A stretch of DNA of 64,000 nt from Monocercomonoides exilis PA203 (GCA_001643675.2 LSRY02000052.1:62001-126000); one strand, 5' to 3'; positions 1,019 to 12,548 are shown, counted from the first letter of the stretch. Made by a program: numbers and translations. The notes: a model not told the origin generated them from the letters alone.

Positions 1019-1444
1019 ATGTTCTTTACTGTTATTGCTTTACTGGCTTCAAACTTGTTCGCAGAAGATTTCGAAGAGTTGGAGGAATATGACTATGATG
1101 AATATGCTTATCTCGAAGACGATGATGGCGAAGAAACACCACAAGGATTTGGAATTGCAATGTTTGACAGAGACGAAGTTGAAATGTTGATAGATGCCGA
1201 ATTTGCAGGAATTAACACATGCTCTGTTTGCAAAACAGTTGTTAACTACGCTTCAAACCTTGCATCCAAATATGGATCCTCAAAAGTTAAATCTCTTGTT
1301 AAGGATAAAGTTTGCGCCGCCAAGCCAGGTGCATTCGAGTCCGTTTGTGACTTTGTTGCAGACAAGGTTATTGACTGGGCCTTCTCTGAGTTGAAGAAGA
1401 AAGTCAATGCAAACACCTTGTGCAAGAAAATTACTTTGTGCTAA
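1019..1444 (+). CDS. Secreted saposin-like protein (amoebapore/NK-lysin-type SapB domain) with acidic propeptide
   Basis: Signal peptide MFFTVIALLASNLFA, then a D/E-rich segment, then a C-terminal domain with six Cys in saposin spacing (CSVC...C...C...C...C at the terminus). Intronless ATG-TAA. Confidence 0.85.
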   Translation: MFFTVIALLASNLFAEDFEELEEYDYDEYAYLEDDDGEETPQGFGIAMFDRDEVEMLIDAEFAGINTCSVCKTVVNYASNLASKYGSSKVKSLVKDKVCAAKPGAFESVCDFVADKVIDWAFSELKKKVNANTLCKKITLC

Positions 1445-1882: not shown

Positions 1883-4800
1883 ATGGCAACGCCGGATACA
1901 CGATCAGTGAGTAGCGTTGGAAACGATGATAGAGCTACAGTTCCATATGCAAGATTTGGATCATTCGATCAATTGTATCGATAGATTTTTTATTTTTTTA
2001 ATAATTTAAAATTATCTTGTTAAAGCATTTTTTCATTTTTTTATGGATACAAAGTTGTATGCACTTTTGTTTTTTTAAGTCTCTTTATTTTAACGCTTCA
2101 TCTTTTTAAGCATTCAAAGCCAATTTCTCCTTTATATATAACTATCTGTGGCGTTATTATGAGTTTTCAATGGCTATTCCTTTCAATGCGTCGCAGCGAC
2201 GTTCCTAATTTGTATTTTACAGAAGTTTATAGGAGAATTGGGTATTTTATTGCTTTCAAGCTTATCTTAACAAATGTATTTTTTCAGACTTTATTTTGAT
2301 CCTTCCTTCTATTCTCCATCCTTCATTTCATTTCTTGTATTTTTTATAATTGCATGTGCTATTTGCACAATAACAATTTCACTTGGAGGAATTATATGTT
2401 TCCTTATTCGGCATGAATCAGGAATACATCATGGGCTTCATTCAATTTCCGATTATTGCGGTCTTTCTCTTTCCCATTTTTTAGCAAGTCCTTCAATAAT
2501 TCTTTTTACAAAGCCAATAAGCTGTCTTATTACTTCGACGCGAACAGATAATATGACTTACTGCAATGACAGTGCTGAATTAGCACTTTCAATTGTTGGA
2601 GTTATAATGCTGTTTATTTTTGTCGTTTTTACAACCATGTACAGATTTTTCGTGATAGACTTACAGCTTAAAAAGCCGAATATGAATTCATACAGGAAGG
2701 GGATATTCCCGGCTTTTCTACACATCATCAATGTTCTTTCATCATTTCTCTGTTCTTTGTTCCAAGAGTGGCTACCGATTGTTTCAAGCATAGTGCATAT
2801 CCTATTGTTTTCCATTCTCACATTCTCTCAAATTTATTTCCTTCCAAACACCAAAATCAGCGGAAACAAGATTTACGCAGGTGTCTTTGCAGCATCTGCT
2901 ATGAGCGGAGTGACGTCTTTGCTGATGCCGTACTTTAATTCCCTCGCTGCCGTATCTCCAGCCGCAGGAATAATTCTCTTCTATCTATCATGGATCATCC
3001 TTTCTGTTGCCGGCGCGCTACTTGCTGGCTTTGCAGTATCCAAAAGGCACACAAAAATGATGCTTTTGCGACCGAAGTATGAGACTTCGTCTGATGTGGC
3101 ATTCACCCAGTTCCTTCTGTCCAGCAAAGAGCTCAACAAGAGCGCCGCTAAGCAGAGCAGCAGCGCCAAGAAAAAGCAGACCAAAAAGGTCATCACAGGG
3201 TTCACAGTGTCTGTGGACGAGATCACCATCGAGCACCGCTTTACGAGCCAGCAGCCGATGACTGGGGCACACACGCCTTATCCCGAAGTCCAGCCGCTCT
3301 CCGTCAGCTCTACACCTGCACTAGCTCCCATCATCAACAGCTCGATATTCCCCACCTCGTCCTTCACATCGTCTTCTTCGCAGGAGGCGAACCTTGTCTG
3401 CGACAAATCTGCTGTCTCAAAGAACCGCCAGGCAGACGGCCCAGAATTCCTGGCGTATCAGAACGAGATCATCAACGCGCTGCTGCGGCGGTTTGCCTCA
3501 CCCGCCAGCATCTGGCACTCGCTCACGTTCCTGTCAATTCCAGAGATGAATTCTGACAACAGCGTCGTCCGCTTTGTGAACAACTTCTTCCTCGCCGCGC
3601 TGAAAAAGGAGAAGTTCTCGTCGTCGGCGGAGCTGTTCGTTTCGTATGCGCTTTTCCTGCGCTGCTTCTACAAGTCCCCTCAAAAAGTGGCAGCGCAGCT
3701 GCAGAAGGCGTGTGACTTGTACCCTGGGTGGACGAGCAGGTGGCTGATATGGACGCACACGAAGGAGCTTGAGGCACAGGCGAACGGAAGAGGTTACTCA
3801 GGCTCAGCAGGTGGAGGAACAACGAGTGGGTACGGGATGAGTGGGGATGGAGTGGCAGAAGGTGGAAACAGCACGATGCAGCTGTCGTCGCTGTCGAGCA
3901 TGCGGTTCCAGATGTCGCAGGCGCAGAAGCACTACGAGCTGGCAAAGGCGCACATATACAGGATGTGGTCTCTGCTCTCTCGGCGTGTGGTGGATGTGGA
4001 CAGCGTCATGCGCCATGCTGTCAGCGCCATCAAGTTCGAGAAGCTGGCACACGAGGTGTATGCACAGGCGCTGGAGCAGAACCCGGACAATCCGAATGTC
4101 ATGCGGCGATTGGCGCTGCTTGTGCGGGACGTGTACTCAGACGACCAGACAGCGAATGAGCTGCTGCACGAGGCAGATCAGATTGAGGAAGAGGCCATCA
4201 CGACAGACTTTATGGACACTGAGCGCACAGAAGACAGATCGACACCCGGGTTTGACGAGATCAACATGGGTGTGGAGTTTCAAGGGATCACCAGCCAGCG
4301 CCGCCGGACGCTCAGCAGCAGAAACAGCGTCGCGGCTGGCGACGACAGTTGGAATGTGATGTCTGAGAAGGAAGGAGATGGCTTTTCAGGGCTGGCGAGA
4401 GTGCGGACGAGGGACAACAGGCACGGGAGACACAAGAGCGGGCGGAAAGGAGAGAAAGACCGCCATTCTTCGGGGAAGAAGCACGGAGTGTCTCTGATTG
4501 AAGGGATGGTGAAGAAAGAGAACACGTTTGACTGGCTGAACCTGATGCTGCCTGTGCTGGTGCTTGGGATATTCATAGTGACAGGGCTGTTTGTCGGGGC
4601 GTATGTGATGTCGACGATGCAGTTCAGCAAGATCCAGACGACTGTTGAGTGTGAGAGGCACCTGCTGACGATGAGTGCGAACATCAACCACATTGTGGAT
4701 CTGGACATGGACATACTCGAGCTGAGCGAGAACTTCGTGGTCAATCCGCAGAATGTGTCGACAGATGAGCTACTGGAGTACATGAGGCGGTCGCTGGAGT

Positions 4801-7520
4801 ATCTCGAAGACACAGCCAGGCGCCAGTCGAGTGTATACGACATGATGGACACAAACTGGATATGGAAGAACAAGTTCATCGATTGGATCGTCGCTGACCG
4901 CGACAGCGCCTCATCGCTTATCAAGTACTTCTTCCAGATTGAGCTGGACACCCTGAGCCAGTTCACGTACGTTGAAGATGCAGCCATCGAATTCATTGAC
5001 ATCATCAACACACACTCGGGAGAGTTGTTTGTGCTAGAGCGTCTGGCGATGCTGCTGATGATGAATGTGCCGATGATCAGCAACGAGGAGATGAAGGAGC
5101 TTGCTGGGGTGACCAACGACGAGATCGCGAAGATCACGACGACCACAACCATTGTGATGGCGATATTTCTTGCACTGGACATCCTAATTCTCTCAGGAAC
5201 TGCAACAATTCCTCTGGCGATTGCCATTCTGAACATCAAAAAGAGCCGCGTTGAGATTATGCGGCAGCTGTGCAACATCCCCGCAGACACGGCTTCGAAG
5301 ATGCTGGAGAAGATCGACGGGCGGGCGAGCGGGAACAAGAACTGCAGCACTCGCACAGCCAATTCGTCGATCGGGTCGGTCTCTGACATCGACGTCGAGA
5401 TCTCTGACGCCCGCACAAACCAGATCACCCAGCGGGTGAAGAAAGTGACTGATGTGCAGCAGCTTTTCTCGCCAGCGCCTGACTCCATTCCAGAATCAAC
5501 TCCTCATTCGCAGCGGAGCCTCAGCTCAAGAAGCATTCCAGAGGTGGAGAAGATCAACATGCCGATGGAGAAGAGCATCACCCCGCTGATGTTCCAGATG
5601 ATGCACACGCCGCAGCCGAACAAGCCGCAGCTGGAGTTCACACAGAACGAGGACAGCTTCTTCCAGTCTACAAAGGAGATTGAAATAGAACTGAAGCCGA
5701 GGTCGAGCAGAAGCAGGAGCAACAAGAAGAAGAGGAAAGATAAAGGCAAAGAGAAAGAGAAAGATAAAGACAAGAGCTATGCCAGCCGCAAAAGCAAGTC
5801 TGGAACAGAGATGGATACTTCTGCCTCAGAAAGCAATGAAGATAACTCCAGTGAGTCCAGAAGCAGCCGCGATGGTGATGACAACACGTTGGATTCAGAG
5901 GACTCGGAATACAAAGCACGCAAAGAGAAGAAGAGAAAAGAGAAAGAAAGAGAAAGAAGAGAGAAGCAGCGGAAGAAGAAAGAGGAAGAGATCACAGCTG
6001 CTCTGGAAGAGGACCATAAGCAGATGATGAAGCAGCGGGAAGCGGACGTTGACAAGAAGCTGAACAGTCTTTCGAACATTATCCCACCGTCTGTCATCAT
6101 CCGCATCCTTCTGGGCGACCTGCTCATCATTATTGCAACCAGCTCCTATTACATCGTGGCCTTTGTGGCGTTTGCCAACTCTCCCATCTCGTCCTCCCAG
6201 CTGCTGTTGGGGCAGTACAGGGACGTGGTCATATCACAGCTGAGCACATTCTCAACAATGCTGGCATCGAAGCAACTATATCCGCCTGTCAACAGCTCCA
6301 TCGTCTACTCGTCTCCCAAGCTGACATCTCACATATTCACATCATCTGAGTACTTCTCCTCTATCGACAACCTCCGCTCAACGGTCTCCAAGCTCTCTCA
6401 GTTCCTCACCACACTCACCCGGCGCTACCTCCTTGGCACTGAAGATGGTGGGCTGACAGGCGACTGTGTGATGGATGCAATCACAGCACCAAGGACACAA
6501 GGATCAGACAAAGTGCTGGACGATATAGCGAATGCTCCGACATCGTGCTTGCTGGCCAATCAGACGATCTGCGAAACCCGCACATCTGCAGACCTTGGCG
6601 GGATTCCGTTCCCGTTCTATGGGATTTCTGAGCTGATTGTGCGTGTGGTGTCTGCGGTGAATGAGCTGGTGCGAACACCGGAAGACAAGCTGGTGTTCGA
6701 TCTGCCCAATGTGCAGCTGATCAAGCTGGTCATTTCGAACGATCTTTCAGCGGGCATCTCGCAAATTGGGGTGCATTTGGAAGAAAAAACATCTGAATTC
6801 AACTCGACTTACTCAACCGCGCTGCTTGTGCTGTTCATTGTCGTGTTTGTGCTGGTCATTGTGTTTGCAGCAGTCTTCTTCCTTCCTTTGCCAAGTGAGG
6901 TGCACGAGATCAAAAAGACGACAAGTGCAATTGAGCGTCTGGCACATACGAAGGTGTACACAACGATCCACTGGATGGATGAGCTAGACACATCGGTGGG
7001 GCGGATGGACCTGGCACACAGAGCACTCGTAGATACTCTCTCAGGACTGGTGCAGATTGTGGACAAGAACGAGCCGACGGAGAAACTGAAAAACCAATTG
7101 GATCAGCTTATTTTGTATACAGGGACACACTTTGCAGATGAGGAGGCGCTGATGAAGCAGTACAAGTACCCGTGGAAACTGCAGGCTGCACATAAAGCAG
7201 CGCATGTGCATCTCGTGAGGAAAGTGCTGGAGTTTTCGGACAAACTAAGGAGGACACGGCTTCCACTGGCGGATGTGGTGATGTTTGCGACGACGTGGAT
7301 ATTTAAGCACATCAAGACACTCGATCAAGAACTGGGCATGTATCTTCTGCATCATGGGAAATCAGAAATCCTGTCGCAGACGCCGAATCTCGAGGAGTTT
7401 GTGATTCCTCCGTCTGTTTTGGAGTTCTTCGACAGTGAGAATGTGACAATGAAGGAGCAGTCAATCTTTGAGGAGACTGTTGCCAGGCTTCGTTCACTGC
7501 CAGCTGGTTCTATGAATTGA
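1883..7520 (+). CDS. Large multi-pass membrane protein: N-terminal TM bundle, TmcB/TmcC-like TPR region, further TM segments, C-terminal hemerythrin domain
   Basis: ATG at 1883 joins in frame to ORF 2274-7520 via three short GT-AG introns (~1975-2025, ~2059-2110, ~2242-2288). Many hydrophobic segments are present. The TPR-like region reads ELFVSYALFL...YAQALEQNPDNPNVMRRLALLVRDVYSDDQTANELLHEADQIEEE. A hemerythrin motif follows the last TM. Confidence 0.85.
6966..7347 (+). other. Hemerythrin (non-heme di-iron) domain
   Basis: IHW..ELDTSVGRMDLAH...HFADEEALMKQYKYP...HKAAH...WIFKHIKTLD. All seven canonical ligands (H, HxxxE, HxxxH, HxxxxD) are present, plus the conserved W and YP. Confidence 0.92.
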
Positions 7521-8563: not shown

Positions 8564-11500
8564 CTATTGAAAGTCCTCCTGATAACTTTGTGCCTGCTCT
8601 GCTGCTTCTTCAGCTTGTGAAGCTGAATCAGCACGTTTCTCTTCAGAGCCATCAACTGGAGAAGGCGATTCTCTGTTGGGTAATTCGCCTTCAGCTGACT
8701 CTTTTTGAGGAGGTGGTGAAGAAGTTGGAGAAACCGAATTGATTTGCGAAGGAGAAGAAACCTCACTTCTTTGTCTTCCTGTCAATTCGCTGCTATCTTC
8801 GTTCTTCTCATTCTGAATTGCTTCCTCCTCTTCTCTCGCTTGAAGCTCGTCTTCTGTCAAATTCGTGTTTTCCTCATCTTTCTCCATTCCCTCTTCTCCT
8901 TCTCCTTCTCCTTCTCCTTCCCCTGCCTCCTCCTCTGCATCTGTCTCAATACTCTTCAGATTCAATCCTTTTCTCCCTGGCCTCGGCCTTCCTCCTCTCG
9001 CTTCTCTCAACTTCCGCTCTTCTTTTTCCTGCTCCTGCGCCTCCCACAGCAGCTGCTGTGCCATCTGCGGTGTCATCACTTCCCTGTTCGTCAGCGCCTC
9101 TTCCATCTTCTTTCTTGTCGATGGCGGAATCCGGAACGACCGTGCCACGCCTGTCAGCTCAGTCGTCTTCGACACTGCAGACAGCGTCTCCCTCACAATG
9201 TCACTCTCATCCTCGTGTCTGTGGTGTGATGGTCCAACCAGCCCACCACCAATACCTGCATCAGAGTTCAGGCTGTCGTCCTTCAGAGAGACATACGAGC
9301 ACGTCTGCCGCGTCATGCTTCCTGTCATCCCTTTTTGTGGCTGGAGCATTCTTTCCTCAGCTGCCAGCTCCTGTTTGTGTGTGATGTGCCACCGGCGGAT
9401 GTTCGAAATCGCATCTGCTGCCGCGTCCTGTGTAGGCGCATCAAGTGACAGCAGAAGCACGCTCAGCGCAGACACACAGTCAGCCGCACGCAGCTGGTGC
9501 GAGTTGGTGCGGTCGAAGGAGACAGCTCGGATGGCACGGGCAATCGAGCGGAGGGTGAGGACAAGCGACGCCTTCGCTCGCTCGCGATGGACAGCTGTTG
9601 AGAACTGATCGGCTGAGGCTGTGGAAGAAGACGAGTATGAAAGGTCGTTCCGCTTCGTCGTCTTCAATGCTCCATTTTTGGATGTTGAAGACATCGTGCT
9701 TTTGAGAGAAGACGACGATGTCAGCGGAGCGGAGCTGCTTCTGGTTGTTGTGGCAGCTGCTTTTGGTGTCTGGCGGATTCCTTTCTCCTTCTCGCTCTGC
9801 TCAGCCTGGTTGATTGCATCCATCTTTCTGTTCCCGTCCTTCAAGAACGATACTAACGGCACTACTCCGCCCAGTTTCCCCATCAGCAGCGCATTCTCCT
9901 CTGTTCGGCAGACAGACGTGATTGCATCGCACAGCCGCCTTTTCAGTGAGTCGTTCTTCGTCAGTGTAAGCATCGCCAGCAGAGGCATCAGGCCAACTTC
10001 CACCAGCACAGCTAAGTTCTCATCGTCATCTTTAGCCAAATTCGCAATCACGCTGCACGTTGCAGCCCTCACGTCATCGTCTTTGATCGTCAGCAGCTCC
10101 ACAATCTGAGACAGAGCACCGACGTAATTCCTGCCCACAACTGCTGCGTTGTTCGGGTCAGCCAGAAGTGGAGTGAGCACAAAAGCAGCAGCAGTGATGA
10201 CGCCGAGGTTGGACGAGCGGAACAGCGACCACAGCAGCCGCAGCCCGTCGTTCTGTGCGATGATGGCGATCGATTCTTTCTCCTCGGCACACTCCGCAAG
10301 CGCATTGCACACGTTGATCAGCAGCTTGTCGTTCATCACGTGCAGCAGCCGGATCATAAACAGCAGCCCTCCTTTCTCGCGGATCATCTTCTTCCCACTC
10401 GCAAAGTGCGCCAGCTTCTCAATGGCCCCCGCAGCGTGTATTTGGATGCGCGTGTCTGACGACTTCAGCAGGTCCAGGAGAACTGGCAGCACAGACTTAA
10501 TCAGCAGCTCAGCGCAGTCTTCGTCTGCACTCGCATGGCCCACGGCTGTAGATAGTGCCACAAGCAGATGGGGCTCCTTCTGAGAGAACAGCGAGGCTAG
10601 CAGATTTAAGCAGCCGAGCTCGCGGATGATCTTCTGCCCTTTCGGCTCCTCGCAGCAGCACCAACCGAGGCACCGCACAGCCAGCGTGAGCGTCTCTGTG
10701 TCGCTGCACCATTTCAGCAGCCGCATCATCTCCAGCAGCGTGTGGTGCTCAACGAGGATGCCCCTGTTCTCTTTGTCCAGGGCGAAGTTGGCGAGCGCAC
10801 CAGTCAGCGCCTTGATGCCTTCGAGGTTGGACGGGTTGAAGCGCTGGGTCGCATACTGCTGCTGGTGCGTGAAGAACTGCTGTAGCTCCGCATTTGAGGT
10901 GCCTGTGGCCTGCTTTGGCGGTGGTGGGATGAATGTGACAGTAGCCGACGAAGAAGCAGATGCAGAAGAAGACAATGCAGATAGATTAGCAGTTGAGGCT
11001 GATGTCGATGAAGACGAAGAAAGCGGAGGAAGACGTGCTGGCACTCCCTTTGTTGTAGTCGCTGGTGAAGAACGCTTTGCAGAAGACGTGATTTGCGAAG
11101 ATCTCCTCGTTGACGAGCCAGCAGAGGCAGACAAAGAAGACGAAGCCGACAGCGAAGGAGAACGGACCCCCTTTATCGGCTGCATTCCTGACAAAGCATC
11201 TCTTGTGGTTGTCTGAGATGAGGTTTGAGCTCCGCCGAGAAGAGAAGAGGGTCGAACAGAACTTGCTGGCATGGGTGGCACGCCTTCGGTTGAGTTAGCA
11301 AAATGCCTGAATGTTTTGATGATGATTGGCAGGATCTTCAAATCAGATGCATCTCTTCGGCAGTTCTTGCTCTTCGAAGCCATCCAAATAAAGTTTGAGG
11401 CAGCAGTTAGTCTTTCTTTATCTTTAGCTGAATTCAAAACACGCACTGCAACTTGAATGCCTCCGTTTTCTCGCACAATGCGTCTGTTGCGGTGATATGC

Positions 11501-12548
11501 CATCAGTCTGGCTGCTGCGTCTAATCCAACTGCCTGCACATGTGCACATTCATCTTTGACAATCGTGTCAACAACCATTTTAACCTCGTGGCTGTCGTGC
11601 ATCGCTGCTTGGATGAATGGGTTTGCTGCAATTCTTCGAAAGATTTCTCCAACAGATCCCCGAAGCTTCTCATCTTTTGCTGTCAAATACTTGCACAAAT
11701 GAGGAAGTCCACCGCAATCTCGAATGGCCAACTGATTGCATGGCTTTGATAAATCAGCTTCCAATATTGATGCGCACGCGACATTTACAACAGGGATGTT
11801 GCCTTCAGATATAACTGATACTGCTTTGTAAATTCTTCCAAAATCTGGATTGTTGCCTTCGGAAATAGCTTTTGTATTTCGTCGAAGATTAAGCTCATCG
11901 TACCCTTCATCATCACTTTCGACCTTGTCGTCTGCAGGGTCGTATTTCTTTAATAATCAAACGATTTACTAAATTATCGAAAATAAAAAAAGAATATCCA
12001 AACAGTTGTATCTTTGTCTTCAGTCAAAGTGCCACTCTTTCCTCCGATTGAGCGTTCTAGCATCTGAGATCCTTTTGTAGATTTTGAAGTGCTTTCAAGA
12101 ACAAACTTCTCATATGCTGTCAAAAATTCTTCGCGCTGTGATTTTAATGGAGAATTCACTAAATTAGAAAATAATTTAACATTCATTTTTAATAAAAACA
12201 TAAAACATTCAATAAAAATAAATAAATTTGCAAGCCAATCGCTTTTGTTTGCTCGTAGTCATCATTCATTGCTGATAAAGTATCCCACATGAGTAGATTT
12301 TCTGGAGGCCGATGATTAGGCATTGCACGCCTATCTAATCCGGCTTTTGTAGAAGTTTCATCATGAATTTTAAAATATTCAATTGTATTTCTTTTTCTAC
12401 GAGGAGAATGAGAAGTACTACGTCTTTCACTGCTTAACGTGGCTCCCATGGAATCTTTCCTTTCTCGACTGAAGGATGTTCTGCCTCGTGACGTTTGCAT
12501 CGAATGTAATCGGTGGTCTTCTTGCGTTGAAGGCCTTGAACTTGACAT
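8564..12548 (-). CDS. ODAD2: Armadillo-repeat outer dynein arm docking protein (ARMC4/ODAD2-like)
   Basis: CNQLAIRDCGGL, GLRLLWSLFRS, GRNYVGALSQIVELL, IANLAKDDDENLAVL and VVPLVSFLK match recalled ARMC4 motifs. Upstream ORFs 12189-12548 and 11974-12201 supply the 5' exons through two introns. Confidence 0.85.

Follow-up and report, generated by a model that had tools for sequence, protein, structure and literature searches.

Strictly anaerobic, mitochondrion-less eukaryotes are not known to have the usual eukaryotic routes for detecting O2. Detection of O2 in such organisms is the context of a locus of the oxymonad Monocercomonoides exilis PA203, located on the plus strand at positions 1883-7520 of a stretch of 64,000 nucleotides (nt) (G000:C50:62001-126000; hereafter the window, to whose full length all coordinates refer). 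The locus was predicted to be a single four-exon gene for a membrane protein of ~1828 amino acids (aa), the tail of which is a bacteriohemerythrin with a complete predicted di-iron site. The gene may be regarded as a concrete candidate for O2 or redox sensing by a mitochondrion-less anaerobic gut protist. According to the sequence comparisons, the protein belongs to a large family of oxymonad paralogues, in most of which the iron site is degraded on the O2 side. Every M. exilis hemerythrin domain was located on a receptor-like membrane protein, and a small clade keeps a complete, predicted O2-reactive site across genera. In the published view, the M. exilis 'hemerythrin' is a simple stress enzyme gained by lateral transfer; this family architecture corrects that view.

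Hemerythrin tail and membrane scaffold

In the hemerythrin motif, three histidines bind one iron (Fe1), two bind the O2-binding iron (Fe2), and a glutamate and an aspartate form the bridges (PMC9388753). All seven ligands were present in the window protein (H1582, H1619, E1623, H1640, H1644, H1679 and D1684, numbered by the open reading frame (ORF) 2274..7520, as are other residues below) and conformed to the signature H-HxxxE-HxxxH-HxxxxD. They aligned one-to-one with those of the hemerythrin domain of DcrH (DcrH-Hr; E-value 4.2e-8), a methyl-accepting chemotaxis protein (MCP) of Desulfovibrio vulgaris, and of the Methylococcus bacteriohemerythrin (McHr). The Pfam domain Hemerythrin (PF01814) was matched at residues 1576-1688 with 28.1 bits against a cut-off of 25.3, whereas the NCBIfam profiles gave 94.8 bits against 84 (NF033749, bacteriohemerythrin) and 84.7 against 51.75 (TIGR02481), both beginning at nt 6966. 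Hence, the intact hemerythrin with seven iron ligands and the domain start at 6966, both claimed in a preliminary description of this DNA, were confirmed. Moreover, 19 of the 25 signature positions, defined as those shared by 60% or more of 235 hemerythrin domains from outside the oxymonads (mostly metagenomic), were kept in the tail, including F1620, E1624, W1675 and I1680 around the site.

The AlphaFold2 (AF2) model of the last 215 residues had a predicted local distance difference test (pLDDT) value of 87 and consisted of four long helices and a confidently packed C-terminal extension. In the Foldseek search, DcrH-Hr ranked first, with a template modelling (TM) score of 0.84 by target and a root-mean-square deviation of 1.9 Å over 132 residues, followed by McHr and then invertebrate hemerythrins, all with a probability of 1.00. 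Only bacterial hemerythrin cluster(s) were returned by the Atlas structure search with the tail. The hemerythrin begins ~30 residues after the last membrane helix; the juxtamembrane stretch between them is matched by the family profile in the paralogues, and model confidence was lower at tail residues 25-30. The pLDDT of the extension was 88-96 over tail residues 171-210, and its residues P179, S181 and S188 (tail numbering) were nearly invariant across the aligned paralogue tails.

DcrH-Hr was the best match in both sequence and fold, which bears out the analogy drawn earlier. Like the window protein, DcrH is a membrane receptor from an anaerobe; in both, an extracytoplasmic region lies between membrane helices, and the C-terminus is a cytosolic bacteriohemerythrin that has all seven ligands. 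However, the window protein has no HAMP or MCP domain, and its hemerythrin is carried by a TmcB scaffold with 11-12 helices, a tetratricopeptide repeat (TPR) region, two loops and an additional C-terminal extension. We know of no chemotaxis phosphorelay in the eukaryotic host, unlike that of DcrH. The hemerythrin of DcrH is placed after its cytoplasmic signalling domain (PMC9388753). Among long hemerythrin architectures, the commonest is an MCP that ends in a hemerythrin (PMC4919030). In eukaryotes, hemerythrins of the O2-binding type were found in only 4 of 135 surveyed genomes (PMC4919030).

The eukaryotic iron-sensing E3 ligases FBXL5 and BTS/HRZ also use a hemerythrin-type bundle as a sensor, but their domain is of another hemerythrin subtype and they are not membrane proteins. 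In such hemerythrin-like domains (mammalian FBXL5, plant BTS), the fold needs bound iron to be stable. The iron-loaded fold of the tail might likewise set the half-life or trafficking of the receptor in response to iron or O2, and its terminal position would suit a degron. This stability switch is distinctly unlikely: the domain is of the bacterial O2-binding type, FBXL5 matched the tail model only weakly (Foldseek E-value ~0.9, TM score 0.23-0.29), no F-box or RING domain was found in the protein, and the tail runs on into a conserved, confidently packed extension instead of a disordered degron.

Upstream of the tail, the TPR_TmcB domain (PF25474) was matched at residues 540-641 (E-value 1.5e-12; 48 bits against a cut-off of 27). 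Hydropathy analysis gave six strong helices in residues 17-251 and single helices at 757-775, 959-977, 1276-1298 and 1517-1540; with the helix of exon 3 and perhaps one weak helix, the total was 11-12. The linker contains 59 lysines and arginines and 52 aspartates and glutamates in 281 residues. Basic residues are concentrated on those sides of the membrane helices that face the TPR region, the charged linker and the tail; according to the positive-inside rule, these three parts would therefore lie in the cytosol, and loops 1 and 2 would lie outside or in a lumen. These results agree with the anatomy described earlier, namely an N-terminal membrane bundle, a TPR-like region, two membrane-flanked loops, a charged linker and a hemerythrin directly after the last helix.

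The conservation of each region was evaluated against the paralogous MONOS_2049 locus (L025). The identity was 70% for the hemerythrin, 68% for the TPR region (taken widely, residues 395-645), 59% for the N-terminal bundle, 57% for loop 2, 47% for the linker and 34% for loop 1. Loop 1 was the fastest-diverging structured part, whereas the hemerythrin and TPR regions were the most conserved. Such a pattern is that of a receptor whose ectodomain evolves fast and whose cytosolic apparatus is under constraint. No Pfam match was found for loop 1, and no sequence family was matched by loop 2, which has two invariant cysteines (C164 and C172) and an invariant G..TGD..LD....RTQG motif. In the AF2 model of loop 2 (pLDDT 83), the two flanking membrane helices run on into a four-helix bundle. 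In a structural search other than Foldseek, its top matches were the ligand-binding domains of chemoreceptors and sensor kinases, in the order PilJ (Z 13.3), Vc1313 (11.8), McpN (11.6), Adeh_2942, McpS, PcaY, HK9, NarQ (9.7), Tsr and NarX; Z values below ~13 are common among helical bundles by their arrangement alone. Foldseek returned nothing for loop 2 at an E-value of 0.001 or less, and long-helix proteins such as FlgL had TM scores of ~0.3. An internal duplication giving rise to loops 1 and 2 was rejected, as hhalign detected no homology between them (probability 0.8%).

Beyond TPR_TmcB and hemerythrin, no family was matched when the ORF was scanned whole and in pieces at E-values up to 1-10; among others, HAMP, MCP, F-box, RING, GGDEF, HD-GYP, P-type ATPase and reductase domains were not found in Pfam. 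The Pfam scans agree with the earlier statement that the protein has no obvious catalytic output, PAS or cyclase domain. Its many membrane helices and the lack of a soluble catalytic domain would suit a transporter or channel in which the 11-12 helices are the effector and the hemerythrin is the redox gate, as suggested for the P1B-5-type ATPase of Acidothermus cellulolyticus. That pump, a multi-pass protein with a cytosolic C-terminal hemerythrin-like domain, represents a known class of bacterial hemerythrin sensors (PMC9388753). The window protein resembles it in this arrangement, but its domain scores as a true bacteriohemerythrin instead of a 'hemerythrin-like' one, and P-type ATPase domains are missing. 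Furthermore, no transporter or channel family was matched in the membrane part, and very long regions, both cytosolic and extracellular, separate the helices, an arrangement more typical of a receptor. We also know of no transport by TmcB proteins, and a redox-gated transporter was considered improbable.

A cyclase or PAS output was rejected. The preliminary description had assumed that TmcB/TmcC scaffolds usually carry PAS or nucleotide-cyclase domains and that the hemerythrin fills this slot. Neither assumption held: the M. exilis genome contained four genes with a cyclase domain (Guanylate_cyc, PF00211), none of them near a TmcB locus, no PAS match (PF13426 or PF00989) was found in it, the Atlas clusters of Preaxostyla and Parabasalia TmcB proteins list TPR_TmcB only, and the hemerythrin-type tail proved to be the standard ending of the family (58 of 69 loci, see below). 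The Dictyostelium discoideum proteins TmcB and TmcC are likewise multi-pass membrane proteins with the TmcB TPR region. According to the passages of PMC12750705 and PMC8516963 that cite this work, Dictyostelium TmcB acts on the cAMP pathway in sexual development. However, no cAMP link can be drawn for the window protein, as the cyclase genes of this genome are few and unlinked.

The oxymonad family and its iron-site ligands

The copies of the gene in M. exilis PA203 were counted by profile searches of the 82.3-Mb, 101-contig assembly (Oxford Nanopore; PMC8767320). There were 13 hemerythrin matches at the Pfam level, 11 of which shared an ORF with a TPR_TmcB match or closely followed one. A profile of 13 tails (A1) gave 64 matches, and 62 of them were positioned 2.7-8.3 kb downstream of a TPR_TmcB match on the same strand. 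The paralogue count proposed earlier thus came to 58 distinct TmcB-hemerythrin genes among 69 TPR_TmcB loci, the other 11 loci having no tail match. Hence, the hemerythrin-type tail is the usual ending of the M. exilis TmcB family. No free-standing hemerythrin was found in the genome by the Pfam and A1 searches, and all M. exilis hemerythrins are therefore held by TmcB receptors.

Several loci departed from this pattern. The two unpaired A1 matches, L027 (G000:C47:214500-224400) and L028 (G000:C47:466500-476400), were truncated and nearly identical to each other, both being copied from the tail of the gene at C47:111500-121400 on the same contig. One contained in-frame stops, and each adjoined an Asp/Glu/His-rich ORF (741-783 aa) that is itself duplicated; a fragment of the gene seems to have been carried along in segmental duplications. 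Moreover, the tail profile did not match at the two best-scoring TPR_TmcB loci of the genome, G000:C46:308006-308353 and G000:C14:903833-904153 (ORFs of 1722 and 1756 aa), which may be 'plain' TmcB genes ancestral to the fused family.

The tmcB family was reported in Carpediemonas and as absent from all other sampled metamonads (Salas-Leiva et al., 2021; PMC8516963). The 69 loci in M. exilis, together with members in Blattamonas and Streblomastix, contradict the stated absence, and TmcB is one of the larger receptor-like families in M. exilis. No paper describing a TmcB-hemerythrin fusion or family was found in the literature search; hemerythrin-coupled membrane receptors are already known in bacteria, and databases show both domains on the same proteins.

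The ligand states were read for 11 paralogues including the window gene, those of further copies coming only from representative-library matches. All seven ligands were kept in the window gene, L025, L026, L030, L033 and L035. The second histidine was lost in L029, L034 and L036, both Fe2 histidines were replaced (by R and Q) in L031, and the tail of L032 was divergent. The pattern EHHHD, made up of the Fe1 ligands and the two bridges, was seen in 50 of 55 rows of the family, and the second histidine was often replaced. As judged from these sequences, ligand loss is non-random: the ligands of the three-histidine iron and the bridges are mostly kept, and the histidines of the O2-side iron are often lost. 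The large family and its degraded O2-side sites had been missed in the preliminary description. Intact-ligand relatives of the same architecture were MONOS_2049, MONOS_10743, MONOS_3906, MONOS_6676, Blattamonas KAK2957477 and Streblomastix KAA6404451, which are separate genes and differ strongly from the window protein in loop 1 and the linkers. At least six intact-site copies occur among the ~58 genes. The tail domain is a defined unit of 185 residues (nt 6966-7520), and the intact-site and half-site paralogues in one genome form natural comparison sets. A further ligand variant was seen in L037-L039, Logan contigs of transcript length (ERR12411572, ERR12411574 and ERR12411804; 5.5-5.8 kb) that encode a 1713-aa TmcB protein; its tail reads HHEHHDD, with the last histidine changed to aspartate.

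The tail could also be a structural module only, a bundle, with or without a structural metal, for folding, dimerisation or docking in which the full ligand set is an ancestral leftover and senses nothing. In favour of this explanation, most family members have a degraded O2-side site and yet keep the bundle and the extension, and no output is known. However, seven ligands and the signature were kept in the whole intact clade described below and in Streblomastix P0041, with neighbouring regions at 20-60%. The five ligands of the other iron were kept almost universally, which suggests that metal binding matters, and a purely structural role is unlikely.

The relatives elsewhere were explored by an exhaustive protein search with the tail profile, which gave 27,721 matches at an E-value of 1e-3 or less. 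Among the best 150 of these, ~40 proteins, 1100-3350 aa long, matched the whole tail at their C-terminal end, from the juxtamembrane helix to the extension; the ones looked up belonged to M. exilis, Blattamonas nauphoetae and Streblomastix strix. The remainder of the best 150 were bacterial or metagenomic hemerythrins, mostly tandem doubles of ~280 aa, and included some large SBP-PAS-SpoIIE signalling proteins. Word-index protein searches gave only three paralogues and one metagenomic hemerythrin. Several Blattamonas entries are annotated as 'putative hemerythrin', and others carry the UniProt label 'TmcB/TmcC TPR repeats domain-containing'. One of the matches, P0017 (Blattamonas nauphoetae KAK2960695, 3353 aa), had two tails, at residues 1470-1666 (HQEHHHD) and 3164-3320 (RVEHHHD), and probably represents two neighbouring family genes fused in annotation.

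The phylogeny was evaluated with IQ-TREE for 38 oxymonad and 44 other hemerythrin domains, in an unrooted tree built from few columns. On one side of a single branch (Shimodaira-Hasegawa-like approximate likelihood ratio test (SH-aLRT) 91) were 37 of the 38 oxymonad domains. Only the long-branched L032 fell elsewhere, and a single oxymonad clade was not rejected by the approximately unbiased test (p 0.46). The window gene belonged to a clade of eight rows (SH-aLRT 96) comprising six M. exilis genes, Blattamonas P0014 and a 374-aa fragment (P0016), and every row of it had all seven ligands. P0014 carries TPR_TmcB and Hemerythrin, and its tail extension is nearly word-for-word that of the window protein. 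Seven ligands were also kept in Streblomastix P0041, which fell outside this intact clade. In an earlier FastTree tree of 277 domains, the oxymonad sequences were scattered with low support. The IQ-TREE result is compatible with a single fusion, an ancestral intact site and later expansion. Such a tree had been proposed earlier as a test of bacterial origin; it does not name a donor lineage.

Proposed oxygen or redox sensing weighed against oxygen defence

Sensing of O2 or redox state by the tail, with a relay to partners, is the best reading of the locus, although it is held tentatively. The tail would hold two irons, which would rest in the diferrous state in the reduced cytosol of an anaerobe. 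Incoming O2, or H2O2 or NO, might bind at or oxidise the two-histidine iron (Fe2), and the change at Fe2 could be handed on to the two elements next to the domain, namely the juxtamembrane helix and the conserved extension at the C-terminus. The binding properties of the TPR platform or the behaviour of the membrane part would then be altered, and the protein would couple the internal O2 or redox status with whatever the extracellular loops bind. Because nothing catalytic was detected, the output would run through partner proteins or the membrane domain; the TPR partners suggested earlier may be one such route.

This sensing reading is supported by the profile scores, the seven-ligand alignment, the superposition on DcrH-Hr and the kept signature positions. 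The hemerythrin was the most constrained region of the protein, compared with loop 1, and the intact clade extends across genera. The cytosolic placement parallels that of DcrH, and the non-random ligand loss is also consistent with sensing. No free-standing hemerythrin competes for this role in the genome. Bacterial hemerythrin sensors, which act by redox-dependent change, provide a precedent. The activities of Bhr-DGC of Vibrio cholerae and Bhr-HD-GYP of Ferrovum depend on the diferrous or diferric state (PMC9388753). Their use of a complete di-iron hemerythrin as a redox or O2 input is the mechanism proposed for the window protein, but they are soluble proteins with an N-terminal hemerythrin and a catalytic output, whereas the window protein has no GGDEF or HD-GYP domain.

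Several points weigh against sensing. In most family copies, one or both of the O2-side histidines are gone; therefore, O2 binding cannot be the job shared by the family, and the site of the intact copies may simply be an ancestral one that persisted. With no output domain found, the signalling step is conjecture. The iron, O2 and redox behaviour of all family members and the expression and splicing of the window gene are predictions from sequence, and the likeness of loop 2 to four-helix-bundle sensors (Z 11-13) is a resemblance only. Furthermore, M. exilis hemerythrin was placed among the oxygen-stress defence genes, citing Kendall 2014, and not in signalling (Karnkowska et al., 2019; PMC6759080).

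This listing and the intact di-iron site would favour oxygen defence, in which the di-iron tail, tethered to the membrane, would take up or buffer O2 or H2O2 near it and shield O2-labile Fe-S enzymes. M. exilis is an anaerobe rich in Fe-S enzymes, and Campylobacter HerA and HerB have reportedly been proposed to protect such O2-labile enzymes. However, a stoichiometric binder on an 1800-aa scaffold with 11-12 membrane passes, a TPR region and ectodomains would be an odd detoxifier. Although most paralogues are without the O2-side histidine, 58 genes have retained the tail, and no reductase partner domain was found in the protein. Defence was hence given a small chance of being correct.

A wider form of the sensing reading, rather doubtful as a joint claim, would treat the ~58 TmcB-hemerythrin genes as a eukaryotic receptor class of their own. 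It would have arisen by a single fusion of a bacterial hemerythrin with TmcB before the oxymonad genera split. The intact members would be the primary O2 or redox sensors of oxymonads, and the half-site members would be re-tuned, for example to a single metal. As part of the same claim, the class would be a eukaryotic counterpart of DcrH that signals without a known catalytic domain.

Gene model and neighbouring sequences

The coding sequence was delimited by comparison with L025. The ORF 2274..7520 is unbroken (1748 aa), with a G+C content of ~50% compared with 23-30% in the flanks, and the summed exons of 5487 nt correspond to 1828 codons and a stop. In the DNA alignment with L025, the exons were gap-free with 70-83% identity, whereas the introns (54-57%) and the 5' flank (26%) were gapped. 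All three introns are 46-54 nt long with GT..AG ends. The exon 1 peptide was kept in L025, L030 and L033; its DNA was 76% identical to that of L025 without gaps, and the differences were mostly at third codon positions. The exon 2 peptide was identical in L025 and similar in L030 and L033. The exon 3 peptide was kept in L025 as far as the same junction, and intron 3 had the same phase-2 position and protein junction there. An in-frame stop at 2268-2270 is spliced out with intron 3 in this model. The donor at 2242 was preferred to an alternative at 2212, which is less likely given that L025 keeps the peptide encoded as far as 2241. Exon 4 was 49% identical to the MONOS_2049 paralogue across 99% of its length. 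The gene start at 1883 given earlier proved right, as the three upstream exons are kept in paralogues and the introns have diverged with gaps. The features are summarized in Table 1.

Table 1. Predicted features of the TmcB-hemerythrin gene in the window
Feature	Position (nt)	Strand	Remarks
Exon 1	1883..1974	+	Start codon, 30 codons + 2 bases; hydrophilic N-terminal peptide
Intron 1	1975..2025	+	51 nt, GTATCG...AAAG; 54% identity to L025, gapped
Exon 2	2026..2056	+	31-nt mini-exon, aromatic-rich peptide; 81% identity to L025, no gaps
Intron 2	2057..2110	+	54 nt, GTATGC...TAAG
Exon 3	2111..2241	+	Membrane helix at ~nt 2123-2188, then basic stretch; 70% identity to L025, no gaps
Intron 3	2242..2287	+	46 nt, GTATTT...TCAG; phase 2
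Exon 4	2288..7520	+	Remaining coding sequence to TGA stop; unbroken ORF
N-terminal membrane-helix bundle	2322..3026	+	Six strong helices, Kyte-Doolittle peaks 1.5-2.8; exon 3 adds one
TPR_TmcB domain (PF25474)	3891..4196	+	Predicted cytosolic
Helix, extracellular loop 1, helix	4542..5204	+	Loop of ~180 aa, helical; from hydropathy
Cytosolic linker	5205..6098	+	Ser-rich, then Lys/Glu/Arg-rich low complexity
Helix, extracellular loop 2, last helix	6099..6893	+	Four-helix bundle, distal cap, two invariant Cys
Juxtamembrane helix and short linker	6894..6965	+	Between last membrane helix and hemerythrin; helix at 8-25 of tail model
Bacteriohemerythrin domain	6966..7346	+	Pfam, NCBIfam, ligand alignment, AF2
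Ligand codons	7017-7019 (H), 7128-7130 (H), 7140-7142 (E), 7191-7193 (H), 7203-7205 (H), 7308-7310 (H), 7323-7325 (D)	+	
C-terminal extension	7347..7517	+	Two short helices after hemerythrin

The public protein model of MONOS_2049 (P0001; locus L025:940-1340, G000:C35) starts at an out-of-frame ATG inside exon 3 and runs through the short intron 3, without the three upstream exons common to both paralogues. The first ~28 residues of this model are probably wrong. An antisense ORF at 4280..5488 (minus strand, 402 aa) was taken as spurious; the conserved sense ORF contains it entirely, and codon composition, not a gene, most likely accounts for it.

Two neighbouring sequences were observed in the window. 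Upstream, a 141-aa ORF at 1019-1444 (plus strand) encodes a protein that looks secreted, with a hydrophobic N-terminus, six spaced cysteines and a stretch of acidic residues; it had no Pfam match. Downstream, a convergent gene at 8564-11764 (minus strand) encodes a 1066-aa Armadillo-repeat protein (PF00514, E-value 1e-29) with Ser-rich and Glu-rich tails.

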